From Octopus sinensis (taxonomy: Eukaryota): a stretch of DNA of 57,840 bases. The stretch lies in the NCBI RefSeq assembly GCF_006345805.1, contig NW_021834247.1, positions 1 to 57,840 on the forward strand, written 5' to 3'. The notes beneath the pieces were generated by a model. The model made no database searches. It was not told the DNA's origin and saw only the letters and a program-made list of their open reading frames with translations. The stretch's first letter is position 1. The number at the start of each line of letters is the position of its first letter. Positions 3,942 through 50,920 of this stretch are shown piece after piece. The position numbers were made by a program, and so were the translations under genes.

Positions 3942-4024
3942 ATGGATGTAAATAAGATTATAAGCAAGATTCTGACTGGGAACTTTGAAGATGTGAAACG
4001 ATTTATCAGAAAAATCCTGAAACA
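3942..4024 (+). CDS. Probable coding exon 1 (MDVNKIISKILTGNFEDVKRFIRK...), with an apparent 1-nt deletion in an A run
   Basis: ATG at 3942 and strong donor ACA|GTAAGT. One extra A in CAGAAAAATCC gives RKNPET, joining in phase 0 to VNQINSRSKT, which resembles the helix preceding the first ANK repeat of MIB-type proteins. Confidence 0.55.
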
Positions 4025-7727: not shown

Positions 7728-9927
7728 CTTTCTTTCTTTGTCTTTCATATCCCTTTCTTTCACTCCAGCATCTTCTTTACTCTCTCTTCTCTTCTCTCCT
7801 TTCTCTCTCTCTCTATTCTTCCCTCCTATCTCTCTATCTCTCTCTCTCCTTTGATATGTTTTATATATCTTCTCTTTCTTCTCTTCAGGTCAACCAAATA
7901 AACTCACGCAGTAAAACTTTCTTAATGGCAGCTTGTGAACAGGGCAGCACAAGTCTCATAGCCTTCTTGATAGAATCTGGAGCCAATATGGACATGAGTG
8001 ACGAAAAAGGTCGCACAGCTTTACATTATGCTGTGAAAAGGTAAGACTTGAATTAACTAAAATCTTGAGATCTGCTTTTGTTTTGAAATTTTTTGCAATT
8101 CCAGACTATTTGAATATCCAAAGATACCATAATAGTGGCAGTGTGACACGATAACAGCATGATAGTAGTAACCAAATAACATCTTTTTCTCATTTTCTCC
8201 ATGAATCCCCTTCATTGGATCACAAAAATCTTTTTCGTTATTTGTTGTCAAAACAGATTATTTTTGTTTTGGAGATATTCTTTGAGAGCCAACAGTTCTT
8301 AAAATTGACCCAGTGTGATTCAGTGTCTTCTCTTCATATTGATTATGGAGAGATCGATCAATTTTTCTCCAAAGAAAATATTATTTGAGATCTAAAGCAA
8401 CAAGAAAGATTCTCAAGCTTGTTTTGGCAGTAAATAATCTGTAAATTTCTTACAGAAATTATTTCTCACCTCCATCTGCAACTCACTCAACACATTTTGA
8501 GATCTATTATATTTTGAATTGTGCTTCATAAGGTCATCTCTGGACAATAAAACATGTTTTGAAGTTCTTGTTAGTTTCTATAGCTTCTGCAGTCACAAAT
8601 TGTTCCAGAATTTTGCACAAACACACACACACCATCATCGTCATCGAATGTTCCTTTTCCATGCTGGCATGGGTAGGAGGGTTTGATAGGAACAGACAAG
8701 TCAGAAGACCACACCAAACACTACTGTCTGCTTAGGTTTGGTTTCTATGGCTGGACGACCTTCCTAACACCAACCACTTTGCAGAGTGTACTGGATGCCT
8801 TTTACATGCCATCCGAACCAGTGAGGTCACCAATTAATTGCGAGACAAAGACCTCTCGACTGGTTGAGGTGGTGGGGTAGGGGAGCTAATATTGCTAGAG
8901 AGAAAGGTGTCTTGCATTAGAAGCGGGACATGGCTCCTTCAGATGGAGAAGACAGAGGAGGGAAACACTAGGTTAAAATCTAGTGTTTGGCCCAAGCAAA
9001 GAAAAAAGGAAAAAATAGTGCAATAGGTGTAAAACAACATGTAGTAAACGAATACTCTTACTCTTTTACTCTTTTACTTGTTTCAGTCATTTGACTGCGG
9101 CCATGCTAGAGCACCGCCTTTAATCGAGCAACTCGACCCCGGGACTTATTCTTTGTAAGCCCAGTACTTATTCTATCGGTCCCTTTTGCTGAACCACTAA
9201 GTGACGGGGATATGAACACACCAGCATCGGTTGTCAGGCAATGCTAGGTGAACAAACACAAACACACACGCACACATACATATATACATATATATGACAA
9301 GCTTCTTTCAGTTTCCGTCTACCAAATCCACTCATAAGGCTTTGGTTGGCCCGAGGCTATAGTAGAAGACACTTGCCCAAGATGCCACGCAGTGGGACTG
9401 AACCCGGAACCATGTGGTTGGTAAGCAAGCTACTTACCACACAGCCACTCCTGCGCCAATCGAAAAAAGAATATGGCGAACAGGAGGTGGAGAGACGACT
9501 CGGAAAATTCAAATCTCACCGCTTCCCCATTCGTCGGCGAATTTTTTGTTCTTTATTTTCGTTTTTTACACATTATATTACACCCGGTACTCTACTTGTG
9601 TTAAATTTTTGTGACGGGGCGAATGGATGGGGTGCGGACTCGGATGATTCACACGATCCGGTAACCCCACTCGACAACCGGTCCCAAAAATGAAAACAAA
9701 AAGTGTAATAGGTGTAAAACAACACGTAGTAAACGATGTTAAAACGTTGAGTTTTCGGATCCTGTGAGATTGATCGTGTGAATTTTCCGAGTCGCCTCCA
9801 CCACCCCTCATTCGCCAACGTGTATTTTTTTTTACATATTCGTTTACTACATTTTATTTTATATCTATTGCACTATTTTTTTTGCTCGGGTCAAACACTG
9901 GAGTTTAACTTATACACACGCACGCAC

Positions 9928-10681: not shown

Positions 10682-13600
10682 CATACTTACACAACTGGGA
10701 CCCCCGACAAATTTGTTTCCTTATAACTTTTAGACAGATGGATATCTTTTAATGGAATTTCTATGACAAAAATGCTTCAGATGATGAAGATTCCAATTAT
10801 ATTGGAATTTGTTGTGAAAACAAATTTTCAAACGTTGAGAAGTTGACTTAAATCCTTATTGAAACTTTCAGAAAAATGGATATTTTGTTTGTGTGAAAAT
10901 TTCTACAAATCCCTTTCAAATGGATTAGATTAGGATTATATCGGAATTTAACATGAAAAAACGTTAAATATTTGGTGGATACACACACATATATACTGAC
11001 ACACATCACGGTTATTTTTCCAAAGTTCATCTTTTCAGTTTCTGATGTGTGTCAGTGTATATCTCTGCGAATCCACCAAGTTTTTTTAACTTTTCTTCAT
11101 ATTAAATTCCGATATAAGTGGAATCTTCACCATCTGAAACGGTTTTATTGAAAATTTCATTAGAAAATATTTATTTTTTGGGAAAGAAAGCCGACTCGGG
11201 CAAACTTTCCCAAATTTCTCTCTGCACCCACTAAAATTTTTTTCTCACAATAAATTCCAATATAATTGGAATCTTCGCCTTCTGAAGCATATTTTTGAAA
11301 GAAATTTCATTAAAAAATATCCATTTTTCCTAGAAGTTACAGGGAAACAAATTCGTCGGGGGAGCACACTTGTGTAGTTATGTCTATACAGGCATGCACG
11401 CACACAGACATATATATATATATATATATATATACACGCGGCTGTAATATATATATAGGTTTTTATGCGTTTAATTGAACACGAGTGTATATTTAATGTA
11501 ACTGTTAAGTGAATGTCTGTGATGTTTTATGTTTTTTTCTTCCTTTCAGCCGTAAAATTGATGCAGTGGCCTCCTTAGTTTCCAGGGGAGCAAATGTTAA
11601 TAAGCAGAACTCAGACGGCAACACACCTCTACATTGGGCTGTGAGGAAGAACTATAAAGATGTAGTCAAAGTCCTGTTAAGTAGCAAAGGAAATAACATT
11701 TTACAGGTTAGCGAATACATTTATATTTGTGTATATAGATATGTATGTGTGTGTTATATGTATATGATGTATACATACAGTTTAGTGCCCCAAATTTCGT
11801 TTCCTAAAGAAACCCCACCTTTTCTTTAAATTTTTTTCCCCGACACAAATCCCGCTTTTCGGTTAAGGGAAATACGAATCTGCAAAAAAATTGGTAAAAA
11901 CTGGCAAAAATCGGCATTTTTAAATTACCCCCACCCCTATTTCCTTCATTCTTTACTTTTTTCACAATTTTTTTTTTCAGAATTTGCGGAAAAATACGGA
12001 AATGATGATTCGGACAAAAATTCAAAACATTCCGTAGTTGGGGTTAGGGTTAGTGTTGGGGGAAAAAAGTCAAAGTTGAAGAATTTTGGAGGGGTGGAAC
12101 CATTCCACTGCCGATTTTTTGGCAATTTTCCCGAACCTCCGTGTCCGAAATCGGGTTTTTTTGGCAAAAAAATTTTTAAATAAACAAATTGGTGGGGGGA
12201 CTCTTTCGAAAGTTGCTCATTTCCTTGCGTGAGAGTGTATATATATATGTGTGTGAGTGTTTATATGTATATATATTATATGTGTGTCTGTGGGTACAGG
12301 TAAGATATGAACCTCATTTATTTACTCTCCTCTCCAAATTCATTCCACCTGTTTATTAATCTGATTCTTTCTCTTTTTTGAAATTTTTCATTTTTGCGCT
12401 GCCCCCCCCCCCATCCACTTGACGCCATCTTTGATGTCTTTATTGTTTATCTTTTTTAGGTCACTCAGCGAAATAATAAAGGTTGGACACCTCTACATCT
12501 TGCCTCACTTTATGGACACACAGACACAGCTAAACTTCTCCTACAACAAGATGGCACTGATGTGAGGGTGGTGGACAACGATGGTTGCACACCTCTACAT
12601 CATGCCTCGTATAATGGACACACAGACACAGCTAAACTTCTCCTACAACAAGATGGCACTGATGTGAGGGTGGTGGACAACGATGGTTGGACACCTCTAC
12701 ATCTTGCCTGTCAGAATGGACACACAGACACAGCTAAACTTCTCCTACAACAAGATGGCACTGATGTGAGGGTGGTGGACAACTATGGTTGTACACCTCT
12801 CCATCATGCCTGTCGGAATGGACACACAGACACAGCTAAACTTCTACAACAAGATGGCACTGATGTGAGGGTGGTGGACAACGCTGGTTGGACACCTCTA
12901 CATCGTGCCTCGTATAATGGACACACAGACACAGCTAAACTCCTCCTACAACAAAATGGCACTGATGTGAGGGTGGTGGACAACGATGGTTGGACACCTC
13001 TACATCGTGCCTCGTATAATGGACACACAGACACAGCTAAACTCCTCCTACAACAAGATGGCACTGATGTGAGGGTGGTGGCCAACGATGGTTGGACACC
13101 TCTACATCTTGCCTCACTTCAAGGACACACAGACACAGCTAAACTCCTCCTACAACAAAATGGCACTGATGTGAGGGTGGTGACCAACGATGGTTGTACA
13201 CCTCTACATCTTGCCTCTTCTCAAGGACACACAGACACAGCTAAACTCCTCCTACAACAAGATGGCACTGATGTGAGGGTGGTGGACAACTATGGTTGTA
13301 CACCTCTACATCATGCCTCGTATAATGGACACACAGACACAGCTAAACTTCTCCTACAACAAGATGGCACTGATGTGAGGGTGGTGACCAAATATGGTTC
13401 GACACCTCTACATCATGCCTGTCAGAATGGACGCACAGACACAGCTAAACTTCTCCTACAACAAAATGGCATCGATGCCAATAAAGCGGACAATGATGGT
13501 GACACTCCTCTCCATCTGGCAGTTCAAGGGTAAGTCCCCAATGGATTTGGATTATCCAAATCTGTTTCTTTAATGTTTTCAATAACGTTTGTTTTCTTGT

Positions 13601-14673: not shown

Positions 14674-17600
14674 ATATGTAGGATCCAAGGATTGAGATAT
14701 AGGAAGGTGAGCTTCAAACAATCCATAGAAAATGTAAGAAACAACTTTCAGGAACAAAAGGGGTTTATTGGGGTGCAAGGTTGTTGGTTTTTCCCTTACC
14801 GCATCTTCTGTGTTTGAACATGTGCCTCCTATTGACAGTGTAAACTTGATTTAATCAAGACACCCTTGGTCTGAAGAGTAGCCTGTGGTATACACTTCGT
14901 TTGGATATTTACCAGTTCTGATGTTCCACCTGCTTTGAAACATATGTAGCCCAGATTTTATCTTAACTCATATATATATATACACACATGTATAATGTGT
15001 ATTTGTGTGTATGTAATTATTGATGTAATTAGGTTATAATGACCTAATTACATTTGTTTTCATTGGTTAATCTAATAATAATTGTTTTTCCTCTCCTCTT
15101 TGTATAACTTTCAGGCAACACTATGGTATGGTATCTTTGATGCTGGCCCAGGTTAGTTAACAAATACATATTATATCCTCTCTCTAGTATTCAATATTTA
15201 TATCATCAAAATACCAGTGAAATTCTGGGGGCAGATTTAATCAACTTCACTGCAGCAGCCTTTAATTAGCAGGTCTTGGGTCTGTGAAAAATAATTATGT
15301 TGCTGATAACAATGATGATAGTAGTAGTGGTGATGACAGTCCAACTGACCACCACTGCTGATAGTACTATCTTTAATGGTCAGACAAAAAAAATCATGAA
15401 TTCAACCCATATATATCAGATTATATATATATCATCATCAACCACTCTGCCATATGCCCACGGGCATATGGCATAGTGGTTAATAGTACGGGCTACTAAC
15501 CCCAAGATTCTGAGTTCAGTTCCAGGCAGTGACTTCAATGATAATAATAATAATAATAACAATAATAATAATAATAATAATAACAACATTGAAAAATACC
15601 TTTGGAATGAGAACATAGGTTCGAAATTTCCCCAAGACACCTGATGAAGGCTGGAGGGTATATCAGCCGAAACATTGTGTTAACAACAAACAGGATGAGG
15701 ACAAATATCCATCAAATGTAAATAATGTAAATAATGATGATGATCATCTTTTAATGTCTGTCTCTCATGTTGTGTGTGTGTGTGTGTTTTGTGTAAATTG
15801 TTGGTGTCTGCATTTTATCTTGTGTCCAATAATTTATTTGGCTTCTTGGCTGCTTTTTTCCCTCTGCACGTATGTATAAATGTATGTGTATATATGTATA
15901 TATATATATATGTATACCCAGAAAGAGAGTTACTCTTGTCAGACACATTGCACACTCAGATTATGCAGCAGAGATAAGTTAAAGGTCCTTGTCCCCAGCA
16001 ACAAAGCTAAATAAGGGCATGCTACACTCAGTCCCTATTGCTTAGTTAATCCATTATCATCAGTACATGATGCAATCAACTTCCCTTCTCCTCTCTCCCT
16101 GCCTAACTCAACGGATTAACTACCCTTACTGTATTTGTCTACCTAACTTATTTACCTGTATTTGTATTAACATGGCTTTGCATGAATGCCGGGATGCAAC
16201 ACCCTCCACTGTTGGTGGTGACAATACCTGATTAACTCCTCTTTACAGGTATCCATACTAACACCTCTGTGCTAATGCCAGCACAACACCCACGTCCAGT
16301 GGTGTTAGCAAGCGTTACATGAATGATGCAGGATTAAATGCAAGGACAACTGCTAATGACATGCTGGCAGGCAAATGCTAATAACAACCTTTTCAGACGC
16401 TGATAGCTGCAGCCAATGTAGACACAGCACTGTCGATGTAAGCACATGCAACAAGTATCTCGTCTTATGCGCACCTCCCCCACTGCCCCTACAAGGTCTG
16501 TCAAATGAACTGAAGGGCTACTTCTATGACACTCTTCTGCTGGCCACTTCAAAGATAAATGACCGTGACCTTCGTGGCTGGTGATTTCAATGGACGTGTT
16601 GGGCAGCACCCAGGTATCTTCCATGGGGTACATGGTGGGACACAGAATTGTGGGAACAAAAACATAGCCACCATGTACACCATGGAAGCCCCCTGCGTGT
16701 TGTCCAACATGCCCATTGAAGTCGCCAGCCACAAAGAGAAGGTCCCTGTCATTCATTGACGAGGTAGTCTGCAAGAGGGTGTCATAAAATCAGTCTTTCT
16801 GTTCATCAGGTAGCCCTGGCTGAGGGTCATAAGCCGAGATAAAGGTTGCTAATCCATGTTGCAGCACTAATCTAATCTTAAGTATTCCATCACAGACTCT
16901 GACTATCTCGATTACCTTATCAGCCCATTTCTCTGCCCCCGACTCCATCAGTGTTCCCTCTCTACTCAGAAACTTATACTTATGTTCTTTGCCTGTGAAG
17001 AACTTAGCAGAACTTCCTCTCCACCTTCTTGGATGCAGCACAAATCTACATGTCTCTGTTCAAGCATGTTAACAATATCACCAGACCTACCTTTCAGTGT
17101 GCCGACGTTGAGAGTACTAACTCCTGAGGGTGTTGAAGGTATGGGTCCACGAGACCCTGGGATGGGGGACAGCAGCATCATGTACCTAAAAGAAAGCTTG
17201 CATTTGGCAGAACCCATAAACATACATAGTCTTCAACCTGCAAACACTACACCATCATTTTATCACTACATCATCACTACTTACATAGGAGATAAACCCT
17301 ATATATATATAATATATGTATTTTTTAATATATATTATTATTATTAATATAAGTAAATCAATATGGATTTTTCACAAAGATATACCCATATGAAACACCA
17401 TTTTAATTTTAATTCAAATTTTTTTATATAAAATATCATTCGATACATTATTCAATATTCATATTTTTATATCTCGAAGAGGAGAAGGGTTGTCCATAAG
17501 TGCTTATCAACATAGGACTTCATTATAGAATCAACCCTTTTTGCGAAACGATTGTAGATGCTTAAAACTTAATTCAAAACTTTTAAAACTTTCAAATTTA

Positions 17601-18426
17601 TTTTATACATCATATTTATATTTTTTAATATTTATTTTTTATTTATATACATTTTTAATACATAAGTCTTTCATATGGGTATATCTTTGTGAAAATTCGA
17701 TATTGATTTCCTTATATTAATAATAAAATATATTATTAAAAAATATATGTATATATGCTCATATTAAATATATAAATACTTTAATAGTATTAATATTATT
17801 TTATACAATGGAGCACTTAATATAAATTCAGTATATAATATTATTAATATAATAATATATATATGTATTGTGTATCACCAATATTATGACACGACTGTTT
17901 ACATACATAACCTTGTAGTAACAATAAAACATATTACGGATCGGGTAACACAACAACCATACACAAACCAACAAACAATAAAAAAACACCTTATGACTTC
18001 CTGCAATTAACACCTACTCTCTCTGGTCTCTCACTCAGACTGCTACTATTCATAGTCGTTCAGTCAAGTCTGTTCTTGCATGGGTTCTTGTGACTCTCGC
18101 CACAACATGTAATCGAGTCCAGGACTTATTCTTTGTAAGCCTAGTACTTATTCTGCTGATCCTTTTTGCCAAATCGCTAGCTTACAGGGATGTAAACACA
18201 CCAGCATTGATTGTTAAGCAATGTTGGGAGGACAAGCACAGACACACAAACACACACACACACACACACATATACGATGGGCTTCTTTCAGTTTTTGTCC
18301 ACCAAATCCACTCACAAGCTTTGGTCAGCCCGAGAAATAGTACAAGACACTTGCTCAAGGTGCCATGCAGTGAACTAAACCCAATCATGTGGTTTGTAAG
18401 CAAGCTATTTACCACAGCCACTCCTG

Positions 18427-18457
<31 letters not shown>

Positions 18458-20035
18458 AAATATATCTATATATATATATATGTGTTTGTGTGTATCTCAC
18501 TTCCATAACATTCATGTATATGTGTGTGTATGTACAGGAATGTTAAGGATGTGGACACTAACCAACTCACCTGTTTTATGAACCCCTTATTAATATAGCA
18601 ACATCATAATTCTTCTTTACTAGTTTTGATCTGCTAATTATATGTTCACTCTTGTTCTGCTCCCCTAAAATTTACTATAGTGAGAGATAAATATAGATTA
18701 GGATGAAACAATCTGTTTAAGACCTCTTAATAGATTAATCATGTCCCTTACACATATCCCATGTACATTTTCAATTTCTATTTTTACTTCCACAAAGGAT
18801 TCAGTGAAACTGGATATCGAGAATCATAAGAAAATGACACCATTGATGGAAGCCGTGTTCAGGGCCCACCTCGGAATAATCCATAAACTTATTATAAATG
18901 GTGCAAACATAAATGCTGTCAACAATGATGGCAATAATTGTTTGCACCTCTCAATAATAAAAAAAGAGATGTTCCATTCTGAGGTGGAACCCATTCCCAT
19001 TTTAGACGAGGTAAGTTTTAAAAATTGTTTGTGAATATGTGTGTGTGTGGTTGGCATTAGGAAGGGCATGCAACCGCAGAGACTATGCCAAAATTGGCAA
19101 TTGGTGCCTGAGCAGCTCTGCAGCTGCCCAGCTTCTGCCAAACTATCCAACCCATGCCAGCATAGAAAACGAATGTAAAATGATGATGAGGAGGATGTGT
19201 GTATGTGTGAATGAGAGAGAGAGAAATAGAGAAACAGGCAGACATTGTTTGCTATTTTCTTTCACTCCCATCCACTTCTCTTCCTTTAGTATTAAATAAT
19301 TCAGTTTCTCCTGATAGCACTAGTTGTATTATGTAACTAACAATATTCCATCTTCTTTCACCTTCAAAAGCATGGCCACTCCACTGTAAAGAAGGTAACC
19401 CGTCTTAAATATGTGTCATGTAAACACTGCCATAACTGTATGAAGGAGAGGTGACCAACGACAGAGATAAGTCTTTAAATTTAAGAAAGAGAAATTCACA
19501 AACTGTTTTAAATATCGAATTTCAAGTTAAACGAGTTGAACTGTGTTAATTGCTAGAAAGCATATTTCATTATTCTTTTTCAAAGAAAGGAAAATTAAAA
19601 TAAATTCGTTTATGGACAATTAAATTTAAAGAAAATATATTCATGGACTTTGAAGAAAGTTTCTTTTATCAGTATGATAATGAATATATAACTGAGTTTA
19701 TTCAAAGTTGATAATTAGGATTCCAAATATTGCCAGGGCTTGGACTTTGTGTGTATATTGACTACAGTAATACCCCTTGCAATGATTGTAAAGAAGGGAG
19801 ATGTGATGAGAATGAATTTACATTAAGATGTGCGCACAAAAGTGTAATGTCACGAGATTGTATGTATGACAATGTAACTAGACAGATAGTCATAGAGGCC
19901 CTTTGTTACCAACAAAGATAGAAGCTCTCTGAACTTTGCCCTGCTTAATCTTATTCTAGCAGCTATGCTCTTGGCGCATCCACCTCCACTACTGACTTGA
20001 TTACCTAGATAACAGTAGCTATCAACTACTTCTAG

Positions 20036-20099
<64 letters not shown>

Positions 20100-23000
20100 G
20101 TGTGTGTGTGTGTGTGTGTGTTTGTTTGAAAGACCTCAGCATCTATCCACTGCTAGATCTGATGGTGTCTATTGTCTGTTGTTGCAGAATTTAAGCAACT
20201 CTTTGATTCCCAAATATGTAACGGTCACTACAGATGTGTAACTGTATTTCAGACAGTTGATGGTCACCTATGTATTGTTGTAATGTCTTCTTTGGTGAGA
20301 AGAAGCTACTCTAGCAGTCAACGACCCATTATTATAGGAATTGTCTATCAGACTAACAGTTTCAACAATTTCTTGACTATAATGTGTTGGTGTGTTGCCT
20401 CAACCACCACACCAATCCTTACTTCCTTTACTTCACTTCATCAGCCAAAAATGTTTCTTTATAAATTTTGGAAACATTATTGATATGCTTGGATATGTCT
20501 GTCTGGTGTTGGTTTTGTTGCTGTGTCTGAAGAAATTATTATGTTCTTGGTGTTCTCTGTTCATTGTTTGTTGTTATGGAAATGAGTTGCACTTTGTGAC
20601 CAGTGAAACGTTTCCCAATCAATATTTGGATTATCGAAATTACCAGTTTGAAAATATGGGTGACTGCTTTCATAGATGCAGATCTGAAGATGTCAAAAAT
20701 CTGAGTTTTGATGGCAGTTTTGCAGATGGTAAACTAATTCAAGTAGGAGTATATATGTTGCTAAAAAAATACTTCTTGTTGCTACCAGTTAAAATCTCCA
20801 CAAGGAATTACAGAAAATCTTGAGTGTCCATAAACCATCACACGACCCCCATGGTAATTAGAATGGCCTTTGTGTAACAAATTGTAGCTTGCCATTGTTT
20901 GTTGTTATGTTGTTGTGCTATATTTATGTATACAATACTCTTCCATAAGTATTTCTTTTGTTATGGCCAGTTGGCTTTATCAAGCCAGTTGTAAAGATAG
21001 GTTCTTGTTGGTTTGTTGTGTTCTGTTATTTGTGATACTTGTTCCATTATATTTCCTACATTTGACATGATTTGTTTATCTACAATATATATTTGTGTAA
21101 TATTCTACTCATCGTTTTATATTTCATCATTTGCAGTGCTGCAGAGAGCTCCAACTGGACATGGATAGGAGGCTCTCTGGAATAGTAGTTTTGAGTTACC
21201 TTGCCAGCCAAGGAGCCAGCTTATACCATCATAATAATAAGAAAATGACCCCATTGGACTACATAGAAAATCAACATTTGAAAGAAAAATTAAAAACATT
21301 TTTACAATCACTGTAAGTACTCACTGGCAATGCCAAGATAAACCAGGACATTTTCTCTTTTGTATATAATCATGTTTATATGTTTATTTAGTTTGAATTC
21401 TCCCAATGTATTATTCCGTCATTAGTGTCTTGATTCAAGACAACAATAATGATTTCCAATTCTGGCACAAGGCCAGCAAGGTCAGGGAGGGGATAAGTCA
21501 ATTACAACAGCCGCAGTTTTCAACTGGTACTTATTTTATCAACAGCAAGGTAGAGTCAACCGCAGCTGAATTTGAACTCAGCATGTAAAGGCAGACGAAA
21601 TGCCAGAAAGCATTTTTCTCCGTGTGCTAATGATTCTGCCAGCTTGCAGCCTTAAGACCACACAACAATAATAAGAACAATAAACAGAAAATACAGTTGT
21701 TAGTGGATCAAACGAAAAACACTATTTTGATGACATTCACATGATTGCTGGTGTTGACTGATATACCTCACCATCCACCCCTGACTATTTTAGAGTTCGG
21801 TGACCTCCATGAAAATGTAGTACTAAATAATAAAGTGAATGAACACATTTTGAAATTGCTATTTAGAAGTAAATAGGATTTATCTGTCTACCAACAATTT
21901 TTTTCTCTCTCTCTTCTCTGACTCAATCAGTTGTCATGTACGCTTTCGTGTAAAAATAACCTAAAACACACACTAACAATGTGTATGTCATCATCATCAT
22001 CATTGTCATCATTTAACGTCTGTTGTCCATGCTGGCATGGATTGGTCTGTTTGACTGGGATGGCATGTTGGAAGGCTGCACCTTAGTCAGCCTTTGAAGT
22101 TTTCAGCCCAACCTTGTATGTGTATGTTAATGTGACACTTGTATACTCACAAACCTGCTTGTATGTAATTGTTTACAGAAGAATTTACGATGTACTCTTG
22201 CTGGTTACTGTTGTGCCCCTTAATATTCTGTACTCTAAACATGTCCACAACGAAATATTTTATTATAAATGAATGTTAATGATGGAATGTGTTAATATTT
22301 TGTTCCACAGGTGTCGGTGGTGTCAAGAGAAAAAGGCTACTGTCACACTCCATCCATGTCAACATACCGTTACTTGTCAGAATTGCTGTTCTCAAATGAC
22401 ATTTAAGCAATGCCCCATATGTCGACAACACATACTCCGGAAAAGTGGATTTGGTAAGAACATTCTTTCTTGATCTGTCTGTTGTCTCATCAACTTTCTG
22501 GTATGGAATAATGCATTTCATATTGTAGTGGAGACATGCAACTCCTTGTTTGTAAATATATATTATGAACACTTGTTATAATGTTTGCCATCCTTTTAGA
22601 CATTTTATACTCACACTCGTTAGTTTTTAGATGTGATTAATGCTAAAAGAGACATTGTTTTCTGACTCTTTCACCTTTTGGCTTTACTTTTGAGTTGATT
22701 CGTTTTAATTCGAACATGAAGCCTGGTCATTGCTCCAAGGTAGTATCAGAAAGTTCACGGACTAGTTCTGTAGCATGCCAACAGATGGCTGCACACCGTT
22801 GCGCGCACAGTGAGAGCTAGCAATGACTTTCATGAGGCGGTGTGCTGGGTGACACCACTGCGTTTACTTCAAAAGTTGTGAAATTTGTGCTTTTGTGGTC
22901 ATTTGTAGGCTGTAGTCTGCAATTTTCTAATGGGCAGGAACAAATAACCAATGTGAAATTTTGCGTTAAACTTGTCCAGCAAAGACATAAGAAAGAAACA

Positions 23001-26000
23001 ACAAAACTAAAAGAAAAAGATTGTTATGAAGTGATAACTGAATGAGAGAATTTCAGAATTGTTAGATTAGTATATAGGACGTCTTAAGAGAAAGATGAGA
23101 TTTAGAAAGGTTTGCCTATTTTGTTGTGGTTCTAAATATTGAACTATTATATAGTAACAGCTTAGAAAGTGTTGACCGAAAGCATAGTGGTCACCAATTG
23201 ACTATTGATGATATGAATGCCTTACAATAATGGAATATAGATTATTAAAAGAGACAAAGAAATTTTACTATGAAGTATAAAACTTTGAAATGCTTATTTC
23301 AGTGTGTCCAAAGTCTGAAGAAGAAGCAGCAAAGGCAGTTGCAGAGTCTGTTGGTGAGTATAAAATAACTGTAATTGATTTCTATAAATTTTACCTTCAC
23401 CTGAGTTATATTATTTGTGTGAGTGTCTGAGAACAGGTTCCATTCCTAATTTCCAATTCTTATTTCAGTGTTTCCAAAGTCTGAAGAGAAAGCAGCCCAG
23501 GCGGTTGTAGAATCTGTTGGTGAGTATAAAATAACTGTAATTGATTTCTATAAATTTTACCTTCACCTGATGTATATTATTTGTGTGAGTGTCTGAGAAC
23601 AGGTTCCATTCCTAATTTCCAATTCTTATTTCAGTGTGTCCAAAGTCTGAAGAGAAAGCAGTCCAGGCGGGTGTAGAGTCTGTTGGTGAGTATAAAATAA
23701 CTGTAATTGATTTCTATAAATTTTACTTTCACCTGAGATATATTGTTTTTGTGAATGACTGTAATTGATTTCTATAAATTTTACTTTCACCTGAGATATA
23801 TTGTTTTTGTGAATGACTGTAATTGATTTCTATAAATTTTACTTTCACCTGAGATATATTGTTTTTGTGAATGACTGTAATTGATTTCTATAAATTTTAC
23901 TTTCACCTGAGATATATTGTTTTTGTGAATGACTGAGAACAGGTTGTAGGAAAGAGAAGACACAATGAAGAGAAAAACAGTGTTATCAAGTGATAATTGA
24001 ATGAGATATTTGCAGAAATGTTAGATTATGTAGGCTGTCTTAATAGAGAGAGAAAAGGGGAGGAATTTAGGAAGGTTAGTCTATTTTGTGGTGTCCCTGA
24101 ATATTGAGCTTTAACATAGTATCACGGTAGAAAGTATTAAAATATTAGCCAAAACCATAGTGGTCACCAGTTGACCATTGATAATAGGAATGCCTGACAA
24201 TAATAAAATATAGACTATTAAGAAAAATAATTTAAAAAAAATTTAACTATACATTGTAAAACTTTTAAATATTTATTTCAGAGAGTTTAAATTTGGAGGA
24301 AAACCGCTTCCATAGCACATCGAAGAAAGTGGCAGTTAAGCAACAGCAAGTTGGTGAGTATAAAATAAGTCCGTAAGTGATTTCAAATTAGTTTTACTTC
24401 ACTTGAGCATATTTTCTTTTTCAGAAGGACTGAGAACAGGTTCCATTCTTAATTTTCAATTAATAATTCTTTTGAAGAAATTGCTGAAATTTAAGAGAAT
24501 GCCCACCAAGGTTAGAACAGACAAAAGTTAATGATGTCTTTTGGAATAGAGAACTAAAATATGTTATTTGGTTGGGGGTGAACAAGTGCTTTAACGACAA
24601 GGCTTTCGTTTTGCATTTATACTGTGTTTACTAATAAGTTGTTGTTTTAGCAGGAGTCTCTCATAATCTGGCAGACTTACAATGAAATGCATTCCCAGTG
24701 TCAACATCCTGTCTTTTTGTCACTGATAGGAAATCTATCATTACATCCATTAAACACATTGTCTTTATCGAAGTAGAAAACACTGGCTTGCTACTGAGAT
24801 AACCATTGCTTCTTTGTTGTTTTTCTCTCTCTCTCGCATTCTCTTTTTGATAGATACTAGATGCAAGATACAATAAATGACATTGTCCTCATCATTTATC
24901 ATCAGATAAATGTTCCTGTGGAATGGATGGTGGAGGGTGGGGGTGGGTCACTGTCCAAGTCAGTTCTTATTAGCAGTTACTGTCCACCTTCATTGGTTGA
25001 GGATCATGTCCCACTAAAACATTCCAGCTTTCCTATGATGGTCTACCCTTCCTAACACCATCCACTTTATAAAGGATCCTGGGTACATTTTATTGTGGCA
25101 CAAATACAAGAAAGATTGTTATGTATTCAACAAAATTAAACATTCCTCTCGAACTTATGCAAAGAAATATCAGACATGTTGAAAGAAGAAAGGAAAGTAA
25201 ATGAATTAGAGAGCAACTCGTTAAGAAACCTTATGAGGTTACTCGGAAGCTGTTTGCAGATGCTAAGAGTGGCAGGATAAAATGTAATAAATGAAATCCA
25301 ACTTAGGTATGGTTAGTGGTCAGTAGGGATAGCTAGAAAAGCATTTTTAGCTATCCCTACTGACCACAATATATATATATTTAACTTTTTTGTTTTATTA
25401 TTTACTAATTTGAAATTTCACCAGTTACAATCTGCTTTATTTTTGCAGCTATTAATCTTGTCCATTTCTGCCAAGGTGATGAGCAAGTACCAGTTGTGTA
25501 CTGGGATTGATGTAATCAATTAGTCCCCTCCTCTGTAATTGCTGGCCTTGTACCAAAATTTGAAACCAATATTACCCATCCCCGTTCAACTGTCTTCAAT
25601 TCGCACACTGCTACATGAAACCACAACATGCCATTATGGGTTTATTTCTGCTAGTTATAGGCCTGAATGTCCATGTTAGCTAACTGCAGGTTTCTCATTG
25701 TCAGATGATTAACCTTGGCCATTACATTGTATCGTTTAAAAAGAAACAATGTTTTAGTAGTTGAATTAAGCTTTTATTATTATTATTATTATTAACATTC
25801 ATTCTCTGAGTTCAGTACCTACTTGGGTTGACTTTGCATTTCATTCCTCACAGGTCAGTAAGACAATTACAAGTTACATAACATGTCAAACTAATTGACT
25901 TCATACTCTCTCTCTACAGATCTATCCACTTGTATTAATCGAAGAATTCATAATTAACATTCATTTTTCAAAACCCTCGTTACCACACTATATTGCTGTC

Positions 26001-29000
26001 CAACTGAATCATCTCTTCCAATCATATCAAGTAAAACCTTCTGCTTTTCTGTATATTTTGGTGAGACTTTAGTTGGCTTTTTAGTGAGACTGATTGTTTG
26101 GTGTTTTAGAACATGACCTTTAAACCAAGTATTGAGAAGACGACCCATCAAGCCAAGTAAAATTGCAGTCGTGGCAGATACTGGTGGCATGTAAAAGCAC
26201 CCATTGCACTCTGGGAATGGTTGGCATTAAGAAGGGCATCCAGCCGTAGAAACCATGCCAAATCAGACTGGAGTCTGGTGCAGCCTTCCAACTTGCCAGC
26301 CTCAGTCAAACTGTCCAACCCATGCCAGCATGGACAGTGGACGTAAAGTGATGATGATGAACTGGAGGGGCACATACAGGAGATCTACACTGATCCTAAG
26401 TGAGATAATCCATTCCCACTCATGGACAGTTTAAAATGCCCCCAAAAAACCATGAATCAAATCTCAACTTGGTGGTTTCTAGCAGAAACAATTATATAGC
26501 TGAGTGAAGCAAACAAAGAGTGCCCCAGGAGGTGATGGTGTATCATAGAAAGTGTACAGGTATTGTACACAATTATGTTATAAGCTGTACTTAAATAGTT
26601 GTGGCATAAAGGTGAAATGGTTGATGACTAGTACAAGGCAGAAAAAAATTACTTACCAAAGAAAGCTGAAACAGAACTGATTGAGCAGTTCAGAACCTTT
26701 TCAATCTTGAATGTAGATGGCAAGATTTATATGGGTCCAGTTGCCAAGAGATCAGCTACACATCTCCAAAATAATGACTATGAGACCGAGAGTGTCCAGA
26801 ACCACTGGATGGGTAGAACATGATTTTTCAATCTGCAATGCAATACAAGACACAAAGAAGAATAAAAGGGATTTGAACGTTTTATGACCTGATCTGGTTG
26901 ATGCTTATGGTTCTGTACCACACAAATTAGTGATGGAACCAATGAACTTCTTTTATATATGAGAGAAGATTAGAGATCTGGCTAGAAACTGCTGTAATAA
27001 TTTCAAAATGTGGTTCCTGACAGAAAATTTCACAACAGACATCGTTTTGAAACTGTAATTGCTGTAGGTTGCACAATATCAGTCATTTGGTTTGTACTTG
27101 TTATGGAGATGTTACTTAGATCAGCAGATTGATCAGAAGAAATGGCTCGAGTGAAATCACCCAAGAAGGAATTTAAAGGATGATATAACAATACTAACAA
27201 GAGACCAAAAGGGTATGCAAATAGTTCTGGATGGACTGGATTAACTAATTCTTTGGTCAAGAATGGGGTTTAAACCAAATAATTAATGCAGTCATTTGTC
27301 AAAAGGTTAGCTGAAGCAAGTGAAGTTCAAAACAGCATACAAAACCATGCCATGGGTTAAAGAGAAACCTCTAAAATCTTTTGGACGATGGTATGCTACC
27401 TCATTGTCCAGTAAGAGTAGAAGCATAGAGGTCATGGCACAAACTGAAGATGGGTTAAAGGCAATAGCTAAGCCAACATTTCCTAGCAAATAAAAGATTT
27501 GATGCTTCCAGTTTGATCTGTATCCCTTCCTTGCTTATAAAATCCTTGAGTATCAGTTTTTATGCAACATTTCAGATTTTTTTACTGCTATAATGTATGG
27601 ATGAACAATTATATATAGTTAATAAGATTTTGTGAAAGCATAAAGTGTTTGGATACCTGATATGTTTTTGCTCCCCCTCTGCCCACCTGGAAAGAAATGT
27701 GCTTCATTAAGAAGTCTTCTAACATCTCAAATACATGTGGCACATATATAAGAAGAAAAAAAGAAAACTAAAAGAAAAACAGTGTTATCAAGTGATAATT
27801 AAATGAGATAATTGTAACATTGTTAGATTATTTAAGATGTCTTAATAGAGAAAGGAAATTGAGGAAGGTCAGTCTATTTTGTTGTAGACCTAAGTATTGA
27901 GCTATTTACCTGGTCCCACTGGAGAAAGCATAAAAATGTTGACCAAAAACGTAGTGGTCACCCGATGACCAGCGATGTCCCACTATAGTGGGACAAGTAT
28001 GTCCCACTATAATCAAATATAGATTATCAATAAAGAATTTTTACTCTCAAGTATAACAGTTGCAAATATTTATTTCAGAAACTCCAAAGTTAGAGGAGAA
28101 GTGTCTCCAAGATGTTGCAAAACTGTTAGGAGCCAACTGGCAGCAAGTTGGTGAGTATAAAATAACAGTACTTAATTGATTTCAATAAGTGTCAGCTTTT
28201 GTTTGTCAGCATGACTAAGAGAAGATCCCATTCCTACTTTCCAATTGAAAGGCTAGCTGTAAAGTGATTCTATTAAAGGTATTGGTGTTATGTGTAGTTT
28301 CGTTCTAGATGGGTGATGGACATTGTTATTGTTTTACGTGTTTATTTACTTCACTTGTTACACGAACTGTCAACATTCGGCGTAGTGATACATATATACT
28401 TTAGACACAGTTCGTACTGTTTACTAACAAAATAGTGCCAAAAGTGGGGATGTATTCTACACACGTATACCTACGTATACACATAGATATGAATGTGTAA
28501 CAGTTGGTATTACTGAAACATCATAAAATAGCCACCGAGATTAGCAGGGCCAGTAAAATGGCTAAATTAGAGGACACAATGGATTTAATATTGTCTTTTG
28601 AGAGAGCAAATTAAAATATGTCATTTAAGGGTAAACTGGTGAGTTAATGATAATTTTTTTTGTTTGTTTTACATTTTTACTAAGTTTACGTTTTGTTGTT
28701 TTTTCTTTGCAAAATGCCTGTTTTAATCAGAAATACGATGGAAAGTGTTTCAGGTGGGACATATCTGTCTTTCAGTTGGTAGTACAGGACTACATCATTA
28801 AGTGCATCCTTTTTTACATGCTCCTGTGTATAGTGAGTGGCATGTTGCAGTCACTCCACTGTCCAGTGTCCATTTAGTTGTGAACCACTCTTCACTGACA
28901 TGTAATGGTTGATTGTACGTAGGTGGATGGTGTTTATGTTGGTGATTCCTGTCTTCTTTCCTGCAAGTTAAAACTCTCCTCTTTGCCTGGTTTAACTTAA

Positions 29001-32314: not shown

Positions 32315-32458
32315 CATTTAACCACACGGTTCCGGGTTCAGTACCACTGCGTGGCACCTTGGGCAACTGTCTTCTACTATAGCCTGGGGCAGACCAAAGC
32401 CTTGTGAGTGGATTTGGTAGACGGAGACTAAAAGAAGCCTGTCATATATATGCATATG

Positions 32459-32489
<31 letters not shown>

Positions 32490-32710
32490 TGTATATATAT
32501 ATATATGTGTATATATGTGTGTGTTTGTTCCCCCAACATCGCTTGACAACCGATGCTGGTATGTTTATGTCCCCGTTACTTAGCGGTTCGGCAAAAGAGA
32601 CTGATAGAATAAGTACTAGGCTTATAAAGAATAAGTCCTGGGATCGATTTGCTCGACTAAAAGGCGGTGCTCCAGCATGGCCGCAGTCAAATGACTGAAA
32701 CAAGTAAAAG
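32315..32710 (+). mobile_element. tRNA-derived SINE, 5' truncated
   Basis: Reverse-orientation copy of the 9052-9457 family. Confidence 0.85.
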
Positions 32711-32724
32711 AGTATATCATATGT

Positions 32725-36018: not shown

Positions 36019-36409
36019 TATATGTATGCATATTATTAGGGGATATGTTAGCCTTTTGAAGGGTAATACTGATTCAAGGTAATACTGATTTAATACCCAG
36101 AATTTTGGGGGAATGAAATTCCCTTAAATCATTAGAATCTATATTCAGCATATATATTATATATAGATCATACTAAGCACATGGTTTATATTCATTTAAA
36201 AGAAATAAAGAAATTAGAGATAAGGAATTTAATACTTTTGTTATCAAATTGGTCATCTTCGCTGCTGATAGCTATTTCGAGAAATTATTACAAATTTGTA
36301 CGTTAAATTTACATCTATGTGACATGAGTATAATTTCATCAGAGTGAAATTGTGTTCTTTTGGATTTTACGAGGACCGATCTTGTTTATTTTTCTCTTTA
36401 AATAGATAT

Positions 36410-37750
<1,341 letters not shown>

Positions 37751-37758
37751 ATATAGAA

Positions 37759-42979: not shown

Positions 42980-43600
42980 TATGTGTGTGCGTGTGTGCAT
43001 GAGTGTGTGTGCGTGTGTGTGCGTGTGTGTGCGTGTGTGTGCGTGTGTGTGCGTGTGTGTATGTGTGTATGTGTGTGCGTGTGTGTATGTGTGAGAGCGT
43101 GTGTATGTGTGTGTGTATGTGTGTGTATGCGTGTGTGTGTGTGTATATGTGTACGTGTGTGTGCATGTGTATGTGTATGTGTGTGTGTGCGCGCGTGTGT
43201 GTGTGTGCGTGTGTGCGTGTGTGTGTGTGCGTGTGTGTGTATGTGTGTGTGCGTATGTGCATGAATGTGTATGTGTGCGTGTGTGTGAGTGAGTGTGTGT
43301 GTGTGTGTGTGTGTATGTGTGTGTGTCTATTCACACAGTTTGATGTCTTGAATTGAACCAATCGCCCCCAGTAATTGTCTTTTCTCAGGCAGCTACTCAT
43401 TCGTTCCTTCTCTCTTTTTGCTAAAGTGCAATGTTACAGCGACATGGACATAGCCAATAGAATCCACACACACACACAAACACACACTTACGTACGCACA
43501 TCTACGCACACACACACACACACATGCACACACGCACGAGTTCACGCACACACACACACACACACACAAACACACACGGACGCACAAACACACACACAGA
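42980..43600. repeat. (GT)n then (CA)n compound microsatellites
   Basis: Directly visible. Confidence 0.9.
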
Positions 43601-43749: not shown

Positions 43750-44768
43750 ATTATGTATATATACGTGTAGATATATATATATGTATATATATACATGTAT
43801 GTATGTATGGATGTACGTATGTTTGAATATATGTGTTTAAGTACGTATGTATGTATGTTTGTATATATCTGTTTATGTATGCATGTATGTATGTATGTAT
43901 GTATGTATGTATGTATGTATGTATGCATGTATATATGTATGTATGTATGAATATATGCAGTATGTATGTGTGTATGTAAGTATGTAGGTATGTATATAAG
44001 TATATATGTATGAATGTATGCATGCATGTATGTATGTATGTATATATGTATGTATATATATATGTATGTATGTATGTATGTATATATGTATGTATATATC
44101 TATGTATGTATATATGTATATATCTATGTATGTATATATGTATGTCTGTATGCATGTATGTATGTATGTATGTATGTATGTATGTATGTATGTATGTACG
44201 TATAAATGTATGTGTGTATGTATGCATACATGCATGCATGAATGTATGTATGTACGTATATATGTATTTATGTATGTATGTACGTACGTACGTATGTGTG
44301 TATGTATGTACGTATATATGTGTGTATGTATGTATGTATACATGCATACATGCATGTATGTATGTATCTATGTATGTACGCACGTATGTATGTATGTATG
44401 TACGTGTAATATGTATATATGTATGTATGTAAGTATGTATGTACGTACGTATGTATGTATATATGTATCTATGTATATATGTATGTATCTATGTATATCT
44501 GAATGTATGTATGTATATATGTACATATGTATATCTGTATGTATATATGTATGTATGTATACATATATGTATGTATGCATGAATATATGTATGTTTGTAT
44601 GCAGTTATGTATGTATGCATGTATGTATGTATATAGGCATGTATGTATGTATGCATGTATGCATGTATGTATGTACGTACGTATGCATATATGTATGTAT
44701 GTATGTATCTACGTACGTGTGTATATATGTATGTATGTACATATGTATGTACTTATGTGTATATATAT

Positions 44769-44801
<33 letters not shown>

Positions 44802-46536
44802 GTATATGTATGTATGTAAGTATGTGTGCATGTATATATGTATGTGTGTATGTATGTATGTCTGGACGTATGTATATATGTATGTATGTATGTATGTACG
44901 TACGTATGAATATATGTATATATATATATAGGTATATATGTATGTATGTATTTATGTATATATGTATGTATGTACGTACGCATGTATAAATGTATGTATG
45001 CAAGTATGTATGTATGAATGTACGTACGTACGTATGTATATATGTATAAATGTATGTATATATGTATATACGCATGTATGTATGTATATATGTATATAGG
45101 TATACATGTATGTATGTATGTATGTACGGACGTATGTATATATGTATGTATGTATGTTTATATGTATGTATGTACGAACGCATGTATATATGTATGTATT
45201 TATGTATATATGTATGTATGTACGTACGCATGTATAAATGTATGTATGCATGTATGTATGTATGTATGTATGTATGTATGTATGTATGTACGTACGTACG
45301 TATGTATATATGTATATATGTATGTATGTATGTATGTACGTACGTATCTATATATGTATGTATGAACGTACGGATGTATATACGTATGTATATATGTATG
45401 TATGTATATATGTATGTATGTATATATGTATTTATATATGTTCGTATGTTTGTATGTCTGTACCTACGCATGTATATATATGTATGTATGTATATATGTA
45501 CATATGTATATATATATATATGTATATGTATGTATGTAAGTATGTGTGCATGTTATATGTATGTGTGTATGTATGTATGTCTGGACGTATGTATATATGT
45601 ATGTATGTATGTAATGTATGTATGTATATGTATATATATATATATATAGGTATATATGTATGTATGTATGTACGGACGTATGTATATATGATATGTATGT
45701 ATGTTTATATGTATGTATGTACGTACGCATGTATATATGTATGTATGTATTTATGTATATATGTATGTATGTACGTACGCATGTATAAATGTATGTATGC
45801 AAGTATGTATGTATGAATGTACGTACGTACGTATGTATATATGTATATATGTATGTATATATGTACGTACGTATGAATATATGTATATATGTATATAGGT
45901 ATACATGTATGTATGTATGTATGTACGGACGTATGTATATATGTATGTATGTATGTTATATGTATGTATGTACGTACGCATGTATATATGTATGTATTTA
46001 TGTAATATGTATGTATGTACGTACGCATGTATAATGTATGTATGCATGTATGTATGTATTATGTATGTATGTATGTATGTATGTATGTATGATGTATGTA
46101 TGTATGTATGTTATGTAGTACGTACGTACGTATGTATATATGTATATAGTATGTATGTATGTATGTACGTACGTATCTATATATGTATGTATGAACGTAC
46201 GGATGTATATACGTATGTATATATGTATATAGTATGTATGTATGTATGTATATATGTATTTATATATGTTCGTATGTTTGTATGTCTGTACCTACGCATG
46301 TATATATATATGTATGTATGTATATATGTACATATGTATATATATATGTATGTATGTACGAACGTATGTATATATGTATGTATCAATGTATGTATGTATG
46401 TATGTATGTATGTATGTATGTATGTATGTATGTATGTATGTATGTATGTATGTATGTATTGTATGCAAGTATATATGTTTGTCTGTACGTATGTATATAA
46501 TATGTATATATGTATATATGTATGTATGTATGGATG

Positions 46537-46567
<31 letters not shown>

Positions 46568-47477
46568 GTAATTATGTATATATGTATATACGCATGTATG
46601 TATGTAACTACGTGCGTATGTATGTATGTACTTAGGTATGTATGTATGTATGTATGTGTGTATGCATGTATGTATGTATGTATGTATGAATGCACGTACG
46701 TATGTATATACGTAGGTATGTATGTATGCATGCATGTATGTATAGTATGTATGTATGTATGTATGTAGGCATATATCTATGCATCTACCTATATTTGTAT
46801 GTATATGTGTATGTATATACGTCTGCATCTATGTATGTATGTATGTGTGCATGTATGTATGTATGTATGTAGGTACGTATGTATATACGTATGAATTTAA
46901 GTACGTCCGCATGTATATATGTTTGTATGCATGTATGTATGCATGTATGTATGTATGTATGTATGTGTGTATGTATGTATGCAAGCATGTATGTATGTAT
47001 ATATATATATGTATGTATGCATGTGTATATGTATGTATGTGTGTATGTATTTATGTATGTATGTATGTATGTATGTATGTATGTGTATGTATGTATGTAT
47101 GTAAATATGTAATTATATAAGTATGTATGTATGTATGTATGCATGTATATATATGTGTATATATGTGTGTATCCATCTATGTGTGCATGTATGTATCTAT
47201 GTATGCATGCATGTATGTATATATGTATGTATCAATGTATGTATGTATGTATGTATGCATGTGTGTATCTATGTATGTACGTACGTATGTATATATGTAT
47301 GTATGCATGCATGTAGTTATGTCAATATGTAAGTATATAAGTGTGTATGTATGTATATATGCGAGCATGTATGTATGTATATATGTATGTATGTATGATT
47401 CCATGTATGTATACATGTGTGTATGTATGTATGTGTGAATGTATGTATGTATGTATGTATGCACGTACGTACGAATG

Positions 47478-47511
<34 letters not shown>

Positions 47512-47856
47512 TGTATGTATGTATGTATGTATGAATGTACTTTTGTATGTATGTATGTGTGTATATATTCATAAATGCATGCATGTATGTATGCATGTGT
47601 GTATGTATGTGTGAATGTATCTATGTATGCATGAATGTATGTATATATGTATGTATGTATGTATGCAAGCATATATGTATATATATATATATATGTATGT
47701 ATGCATGTGTATATGTATGTATGTATGTGTGTATGTATGTATGCATACATGCATGCATGTATGTATGTATGTATTTATATATGTATGTATGCATGTATGT
47801 ATTTATGTATATATGTAAGTATATAAGTATGTATGCATGTATGTATGTATGTATGG

Positions 47857-47889
<33 letters not shown>

Positions 47890-49526: not shown

Positions 49527-49579
<53 letters not shown>

Positions 49580-50888: not shown

Positions 50889-50920
<32 letters not shown>

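Follow-up and report, generated by a model that had tools for sequence, protein, structure and literature searches.

Homogenised ankyrin repeats with variation at probable binding-surface codons in an ankyrin-RING-death gene of Octopus sinensis

Introduction

The closest precedent for the element described here, an array of ten near-identical ankyrin repeats encoded by a single exon of Octopus sinensis, is found in the ankyrin arrays of fungal NLRs. The exon lies in a stretch of 57,840 nucleotides (NCBI RefSeq assembly GCF_006345805.1, contig NW_021834247.1, positions 1 to 57,840 of the forward strand), hereafter referred to as the window, and belongs to a gene whose predicted protein combines ankyrin repeats with a RING and a death domain. 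In fungal NLRs, the ANK and TPR arrays known as HiC (internally conserved) are polymorphic in repeat number and bear signs of positive selection at the concave face; their repeats share about 85% mutual identity, are shuffled and undergo concerted evolution, and their variable residues are located in the inner helix and the beta-hairpin/loop (PMC4986451). The HiC class is defined by an inter-repeat identity of at least 85% over at least 100 residues (Dyrka 2014, PMC4986451). In an initial annotation of the window, a parallel had been drawn with HET-E, and the mechanism had been regarded as unusual for an animal gene. The comparison with the homogenised repeats of fungal NLRs is apt, although HET-E itself, of the HET-E/HET-D/NWD type, carries WD40 repeats and the ankyrin cases are other fungal NLRs. 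As for animals, the mechanism is unusual only in part: internally conserved repeats occur in about 0.8% of metazoan ANK/TPR/WD proteins (PMC4986451), and according to Schuler and Bornberg-Bauer, protein repeats that evolve in concert are documented in Metazoa but rare, with an enrichment in host-pathogen functions (PMC5100051).

A second point of comparison comes from protein design, with ankyrin libraries that vary a fixed, repeated framework. The designed ankyrin repeat protein (DARPin) scheme of Binz et al. 2003 is said to randomise positions 2, 3, 5, 13, 14 and 33. Standard position 10 is randomised in the ANK-N5C library, the randomised library residues sit in the beta-turn and helix 1, and positions 2, 3, 5, 10, 13 and 14 are the high-entropy sites of all natural ankyrin repeats (PMC4308713).

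Set against these systems, the octopus array is read here, with moderate confidence, as the target-binding module of a germline-encoded cytosolic ankyrin-RING-death protein, homogenised by recombination and diversified by selection at its binding residues. Literature searches on an octopus or cephalopod ankyrin-RING-death family found no description of the family or of its array pattern, the type of mechanism being known from fungal NLRs.

A homogenised ten-unit array in a single exon

The array and the exon that carries it are located as follows.

12481..13497, plus strand: ten-unit ankyrin array in 102-bp (34-codon) units (Tandem Repeats Finder [TRF]; unit table; Pfam Ank over 10 stretches, E=4.9e-103; Ank_2, E=1.4e-119)
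12460..13529, plus strand: exon 4, with the array and the start of the eleventh repeat; 1070 bp, open over 356 codons, borders AG/GTC...CAAGG/GTAAGT, collinear with the O. sinensis proteins P0001/P0136

TRF reported a single array at 12481-13471 (period 102, 9.7 copies, 92% matches, score 1584), and the in-frame unit table resolves ten head-to-tail units, all contained in the 1070-bp exon. Both analyses recovered what the initial annotation had announced, namely ten 102-bp units with a frozen framework and confined variation, and the assignment of this exon as exon 4, with AG/GT borders, also stands. The Pfam profile match, together with the solenoid fold of the predicted model (see below), places the array among the ankyrin repeat proteins (Pfam clan CL0465). 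The unit consensus is G-x-TPLH-x-A-x-x-x-GHTDTAKLLLQQ-x-GTDVRVV-x-x-x. Units 1-9 are homogenised, and unit 10 is a diverged transition unit, whose differences affect the final third (GIDANKADND) and codon 13. Unit 4 is only 99 bp long, one Leu codon being deleted. The mean amino-acid identity among units 1-9 is 85.7% (range 76-94%) over 305 residues, a borderline value that lies just above the HiC identity threshold.

Seventeen nucleotide sites segregate across units 1-9, and every pair of units in the array differs at two bases or more. No amino-acid change is found in 25 of the 34 codons of units 1-9; replacements are restricted to codons 2 (W/C), 7 (L/H/R), 9 (S/C), 10 (L/Y/Q/R/S), 11 (Y/N/Q), 24 (D/N), 32 (D/A/T), 33 (N/K) and 34 (D/Y/A). 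The framework itself varies only synonymously, with CTA/CTC at codon 5 (unit 4) and CTT/CTC at codon 19, so that, apart from these two sites and the Leu deletion, it is identical at the DNA level in units 1-9, as had been claimed. The W/C/S variation previously listed for codon 2 holds for W and C in units 1-9, but Ser is present in unit 10 only. The variable codons also vary synonymously (TGC/TGT at codon 2; TCA/TCG/TCT at codon 9).

Position of the variable codons on the ankyrin fold

Unit codons were placed on the standard ankyrin numbering by aligning the G-x-TPLH and GH motifs. Codons 33, 34, 2, 10 and 11 fall on standard positions 2, 3, 5, 13 and 14, respectively, and codon 7 on standard position 10. 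The alignment upholds the earlier proposal that the first five of these codons match positions randomised in designed ankyrin repeat proteins. Amino-acid variation affects five of the six DARPin positions, as compared with 4 of the 28 other codons (Fisher p = 0.0024).

With DARPins and ANK-N5C, the array shares a fixed repeated framework and diversity at the beta-turn and helix 1, involving five of the six DARPin positions and position 10. It differs from the DARPins in being natural, with a diversity spread across the repeats and paralogues of one genome and not across a population of molecules. The unit has 34 residues vs. the usual 33, the additional residue being located in the loop after helix 2, adjoining codon 24. 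Moreover, Val is fixed at position 33, the residues seen at variable positions include Cys, Gly and Trp, and variation extends to standard positions 1 and 12 and to the loop insertion, which leaves the array outside the strict DARPin definition, even though it functions in the manner of such a scaffold.

A single-sequence AlphaFold model was discarded, since it consisted of a meaningless all-beta fold with a predicted local distance difference test (pLDDT) score of 57. When an alignment of 67 sequences was supplied, the model reached a pLDDT of 98 and a predicted template modelling score (pTM) of 0.93, with two helices per unit, helix 1 at unit positions 4-11 and helix 2 at positions 14-21. 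It superposes on ankyrin-1 with a template modelling (TM) score of 0.91 and a root-mean-square deviation (rmsd) of 1.9 A. The structures and sequences that match the array best include DARPin fusions, and latrotoxin entries are likewise listed among the ankyrin-containing PDB hits. In this model, codons 7, 9, 10 and 11 are found in the first (inner) helix and codons 2, 24 and 32-34 in the loops and beta-turn, whereas the outer helix holds no variable codon. Codons 7, 10 and 11 are spaced i, i+3 and i+4, and thus share one helical face; codon 9 (Ser/Cys only) would be expected on the helix side that points toward the core. Overall, the model supports a location of the variable residues on the concave recognition side of the ankyrin solenoid, in line with the clustering predicted beforehand, the sites falling in the inner helix and loops and their exposure being deduced from these positions.

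Shuffling, related arrays and selection

The four-gamete test was failed by 51 of the 136 site pairs. Such a number of failures indicates that variable cassettes have been shuffled between units, even though recurrent mutation may be an alternative source of site incompatibility. Cassette TCGTATAAT was found in four different contexts, and four units carry the TCG-TAT-AAT (S-Y-N) cassette, accompanied by three distinct pairings of codons 2 and 7. The contiguous units 5-8 are tagged by a synonymous CTC at codon 19 but are otherwise unlike at most variable codons, and units 5 and 6 are only two bases apart. Incompatible site pairs, recurring cassettes and a conversion-like patch (see Interpretation) together give the array the recombination and shuffling signature of HiC repeats.

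The same DNA framework is used by four further arrays, which vary at the same codons: one from O. sinensis (L002, 4 units) and three from O. vulgaris (L003a, 6 units; L003b, 5; L004, 4), compared with 10 units in the window. When 21 internal units were pooled (window, L002, L003a and L003b), the amino-acid changes remained confined to the same nine codons, for which the minimum numbers of changes were 26 non-synonymous and 5 synonymous vs. 0 and 4, respectively, for the other 25 codons. Codon 10 showed up to seven residues and codon 2 up to six. The subfamily is locally duplicated, with at least three copies (L003a, L003b and L004) within about 175 kb of the O. vulgaris chromosome OX597842.1, and L001 located 10 Mb away. 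The window is collinear with the O. vulgaris copies and O. sinensis L002, introns included, at 92-96% identity, and identical to none of them.

L001 is a more distant O. vulgaris paralogue, whose homologous exon (14700-15095) carries three ankyrin units that are not homogenised. Its last unit (GCTPLHHACRYGHTDTATLLLQQNGIDANKADNN) is similar to window units 4 and 10, which suggests that the H7/C9 cassettes of the window derive from that array end. Also, the annotated protein P0145 (750 residues) is a chimera joining L003a to the next copy, 70 kb downstream.

These comparisons bear on whether the array could have been collapsed during assembly, or built as a chimera from reads of several paralogues. 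Such an artefact is very unlikely. Several paralogues of about 95% identity do share the framework, and the 3-bp deletion in unit 4 is odd; however, both flanks are collinear with four independent loci of two other assemblies, the reading frame is kept across the ten units, and the differences of at least two bases between all unit pairs speak against a collapse. In addition, the cassettes specific to the window (codon 7 encoding H or R, codon 24 encoding D, and SYN, CQN and CRN) are in none of the other arrays and were thus not borrowed from them.

Selection was assessed by counting methods (non-synonymous vs. synonymous divergence, dN/dS; minimum changes; permutation). In units 1-9, the framework codons (25 of 34) have a dN of 0 and a dS of 0.039, and the nine variable codons of the window array a dN of 0.36. 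Since a post-hoc choice of codons was to be avoided, the library positions were used to fix a set of seven codons a priori (standard positions 2, 3, 5, 13, 14 and 33, plus 10). For these, dN is 4.7 times the whole-unit dS, vs. 0.44 for the remaining codons, and only 0.05% of random seven-codon sets reach 4.7 (permutation p = 0.0005). By counting, these sequence comparisons point to positive selection at the binding-surface residues. The concerted evolution and diversity-favouring selection put forward in the initial annotation are well supported, through these counting statistics, by the dN excess, the shuffling and the four other arrays.

At 0.04, the framework dS resembles the divergence of introns among paralogues (0.04-0.08), which indicates that the framework is young or homogenised and not abnormally constrained. 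A constraint at the RNA level (e.g. an editing-related structure) freezing the framework was set aside on the same ground.

A young tandem amplification under ordinary constraint, in which surface positions drift by mere tolerance with no selection for diversity, would account for several of these features: the variable sites coincide with the high-entropy positions of natural ankyrins (PMC4308713), the low framework dS (0.039) indicates units that are young or recently homogenised, and the orthologous arrays of L002 and L004 hardly differ. Neutral drift, however, predicts similar dN and dS at free sites, whereas the observed values are 0.33-0.36 vs. 0.04-0.07, a 5- to 9-fold excess; up to 7 amino acids occur at one codon in 21 units, with multiple base changes per codon, and identical cassettes reappear in different contexts. 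We therefore consider this explanation unlikely.

The host gene and its protein family

The gene model was guided by the closest proteins, O. sinensis 'ankyrin-3-like' P0001/P0136 and O. vulgaris P0020. The gene is on the plus strand and spans positions 3942 to 31953 of the window. Besides exon 4, given above, its parts are as follows.

3942..4024, plus strand: exon 1, with the start codon; net 1-bp loss vs. four paralogues/orthologues
7889..8040, plus strand: exon 2, N-terminal ankyrin repeats (tblastn to P0001, 86%; Pfam Ank_4; splice borders)
11550..11706, plus strand: exon 3, ankyrin repeat preceding the array (tblastn, 87.5%; Pfam Ank, E=4e-12)
15115..15151, plus strand: exon 5, 37 bp, completing the eleventh repeat (QHYGMVSLMLAQ), which begins at 13498 (aligned to the same exon of L001)
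18798..19010, plus strand: exon 6, final ankyrin repeats past the array (tblastn, 76.5%; Pfam Ank)
21137..21312, plus strand: exon 7, linker conserved in the family (tblastn, 90%; splice borders)
22311..22453, plus strand: exon 8, zf-C3HC4_3 RING (PF13920, E=1e-10; PDB sequence search, 3t6p, E=2.5e-8)
23289..23761, plus strand: three tandem 166-bp copies, each with an optional 51-nt mini-exon, at 23303-23353, 23469-23519 and 23635-23685 (TRF; same cassettes in isoforms P0136, P0149 and P0020)
24282..24353, plus strand: exon, linker ahead of the death domain (exon mapping)
28079..28150, plus strand: exon, start of the death domain (exon mapping)
31748..31953, plus strand: last exon, remaining death domain and stop codon (PF00531, E=3.6e-11; RIPK1 death domain as nearest solved relative, E=2.3e-5)

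The predicted protein consists, in order, of three ankyrin repeats, the ten-unit array, three more repeats (about 16 in total), a linker, the RING, up to three mini-exons and the death domain. By sequence, the nearest solved relatives of the RING are those of cIAP1/2 and XIAP, and those of the death domain RIPK1, TRADD and Fas. Pfam, run on the exon translations and on the last 306 residues of the protein, gave Ank, zf-C3HC4_3 and Death only; no NACHT, NB-ARC, MIB/HERC2, ZZ or ZU5 domain was detected in them. A signal-peptide-like N-terminus is absent from the predicted protein, which starts with 28 residues directly followed by ankyrin repeats. Because of this absence, and of the ankyrin-RING-death design, which is that of an intracellular E3 ligase or adaptor, the protein is predicted to be cytosolic.

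The mini-exon block shows further features. The region 23289-23935 contains 2.8 copies of the 166-bp repeat, each copy holding a phase-1 51-nt mini-exon (V[C/F]PKSEE..A....ESV) and the start of its intron. Exons 24282-24353 and 28079-28150 have the same splice flanks as the mini-exons, and annotated isoforms of O. sinensis and O. vulgaris include differing numbers of the 51-nt cassettes. A 58-bp intronic repeat (4.1 copies, 23696-23935) follows the block.

Family searches were made with the RING-death part and with P0125; for the latter, only full-length matches were retained, its N-terminal ankyrin repeat having drawn many generic ankyrin hits. Members were found only in Octopus, namely in O. 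sinensis, O. vulgaris and O. bimaculoides, where they are annotated as 'MIB2-like', 'MIB1-like', 'ankyrin-3-like' or uncharacterised, with a Mind bomb name in most cases. The label 'ankyrin-3-like' is an artefact, as it results from the matches to ANK and Death. In distant members, the ankyrin repeats are of the ordinary, diverged kind, and certain of these proteins possess two RINGs and no death domain.

Comparison with known systems

The likeness to the HiC repeats of fungal NLRs lies in repeats of about 85% identity, which vary in number among copies, are shuffled and have variable sites predicted on the concave side. Furthermore, the best non-octopus matches to the array exon are fungal-type WHD-ANK proteins, including P0028, which has near-identical repeats. 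The octopus gene, on the other hand, has no NACHT or NB-ARC, and no room is left for one from exon 2 to the stop codon; its effector part combines a RING with a death domain, it has introns and belongs to an animal, and its unit has 34 residues vs. 33. Also, differences in the number of units are known only between copies or species in the octopus case, the L002/L004 pair being stable.

Like MIB1 and MIB2, the protein has an ankyrin block followed by a C-terminal zf-C3HC4_3 RING, and the distant members P0172 and P0173 possess two RINGs, as MIB2 does. It differs in having no MIB/HERC2, ZZ or REP ahead of the ankyrins and in the added death domain, and its RING is closer by sequence to IAP RINGs than to MIB1 RING3. 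With the canonical ankyrins (ankyrin-R/B/G) it shares a long ankyrin solenoid and a C-terminal death domain; in contrast with these proteins (ANK1-3), however, it has about 16 repeats vs. 24, and no ZU5-UPA, the RING being in that place. On these domain grounds, the octopus genes are neither NLRs nor Mind bomb orthologues nor canonical ankyrins. TRIM5alpha couples a RING E3 ligase to a B30.2/SPRY recognition domain that evolves fast and has positively selected patches, in a locally duplicated family. The resemblance would here be one of design logic only, since the recognition domains are unrelated (ankyrin vs. B30.2/SPRY).

Modular repeats and cassettes that differ at binding residues bear a general resemblance to somatically diversified systems, either of the lamprey variable lymphocyte receptor (VLR) type or based on gene conversion, and the initial annotation had indeed presented the gene as a candidate variable receptor. 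Receptors of the lamprey VLR type start from a germline gene that is incomplete and bordered by donor cassette banks, whereas the octopus germline exon already encodes the whole array in frame. A low-stringency search of both strands of the 57.8-kb window for donor or spare cassettes outside the array returned only chance matches of at most 23 bases, so that no spare or partial unit accompanies the array in the window. By its design (RING, death domain), the protein would be cytosolic, and arrays are stable between sister species. Somatic diversification is consequently extremely improbable, and the term variable receptor does not suit an intracellular ankyrin-RING-death design with no donor cassettes and a stable orthologous pair.

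Interpretation

Recombination between units is proposed because they lie head to tail in one exon and have near-identical DNA. Within the array and between neighbouring paralogues, unequal crossing-over and gene conversion would alter the number of units and keep the framework uniform while moving short variable cassettes. Selection would maintain, and probably favour, differences at the beta-turn and inner-helix residues lining the concave binding groove, each paralogue thus presenting a distinct binding surface on a common scaffold. The array might bind a fast-changing partner, e.g. a pathogen or mobile-element protein; judging from the domain relatives, the IAP-type RING would then carry out ubiquitination and the RIPK1-like death domain would provide a link to death-fold signalling complexes. 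By analogy, the protein is plausibly a sensor or regulator of innate immunity or cell death, with a logic comparable to that of fungal NLRs or TRIM5.

Several points weigh against this reading. The variable residues were assigned to the concave face from their place in the secondary structure and from ankyrin structures in the literature (PMC4308713, PMC4986451), and the proposed biological role was deduced solely from domain relatives. Recombining repeats violate tree-based tests. The proportion of synonymous differences (pS) inside the variable codons is raised as well, at about 0.20 vs. 0.04 (on 4.4 synonymous sites only), so that the signal may partly reflect old cassettes kept through homogenisation and not new adaptive substitutions. 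Retention of old cassettes with homogenisation of their flanks fits the raised pS at least as well as fresh adaptive substitution does, and both are selection for diversity. Concerning the pace of change, the orthologous pair formed by L002 (O. sinensis) and L004 (O. vulgaris) is 98-99% identical over 25 kb, and the arrays (L002 17953-18360 and L004 45-452) have the same four units, with 3 of about 510 bases differing. This near-identity means that array turnover is not fast between these sister species, and the description of the module as rapidly evolving was not borne out. The three differences are all in codons 9-10 of unit 1 (TCACTT vs. TCTTAT), and the O. vulgaris version is a cassette already present in other units; from its sequence, the patch looks like a short gene-conversion event.

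Frameshifts add to these points. Exon 1 of the window reads ATCAGAAAAATCC, vs. AT[CG]AAAGAAAATCC in L001, L002 and both L003 copies, and this net 1-bp loss shifts the frame, with a stop in exon 2. The array of L003a (L003 19838-20480) is also out of frame, one base being deleted from codon 32 of its unit 3. Together, the two frameshifts imply that some family members are decaying, and the window copy may be broken. Its exon-1 frameshift may be genuine or due to misassembly of an A-rich run, or else another start may bypass it.

The question thus arises whether the window copy is a recently dead pseudogene, the ten-unit array being the outcome of unconstrained slippage. Of five copies, only that of the window has the exon-1 loss, no annotated protein was found to be identical to its product, and the frameshift of L003a goes in the same direction. 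This explanation is nevertheless rather unlikely, although it has to be taken seriously: 765 codons are open from exon 2 through the stop, with intact splice sites, and decay would not have spared the 25 framework codons, which show no replacement over nine units. The indel, being in an A-rich run, could be an assembly error, and a downstream Met or another first exon could serve as start. Besides, the explanation concerns the window copy only and leaves the pattern of the intact paralogues unexplained.

The reading of the array as a homogenised and diversified target-binding module may be carried further, though as a tentative and somewhat doubtful extension: the clustered Octopus repertoire would constitute a germline library of binding surfaces renewed by shuffling, the proteins acting as intracellular immune or cell-death sensors, as an animal equivalent of the fungal NLR repeat system on an E3-ligase/death-fold chassis, and the arrays being polymorphic among individuals in unit number and cassette order. 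To our knowledge, cephalopods have no adaptive immunity, and their recognition of diverse pathogens is little understood. A clustered family found only in Octopus, with a diversified ankyrin face coupled to an IAP-like RING and a RIPK1-like death domain, is thus a testable candidate for a fast-adapting intracellular recognition system. If this were true, a strategy of fungal NLRs, copied in DARPins, would have arisen independently in an animal, and the natural 34-residue framework with its tolerated substitutions is a data set for repeat-protein design. If the pattern reflects only the recent duplication of a decaying gene, it would be an ordinary by-product of segmental duplication.

Other repeats and elements in the window

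Outside the exons, the window contains a 7.3-kb (ATGT)n microsatellite at 43795-51071, of about 1828 copies and with a strong GC skew (+0.6), with long stretches of (AC)n/(TG)n and of (AT)n nearby (42982-43326, 51337-51844, 36402-36904 and 37424-37755). Open stretches resembling the endonuclease/reverse transcriptase of long interspersed nuclear elements (LINEs), recognised from motifs by eye only, are present on the minus strand at 16337-17059 and 57161-57559, the former sitting within an intron of the ankyrin-RING-death gene. Finally, a 135-bp satellite (6.9 copies, or alternatively a 400-bp period) occupies 52578-53510; its element is tandem in O. vulgaris L001 and L003, and single copies are found in the window at about 9060-9460, 18110-18440 and 32320-32714.

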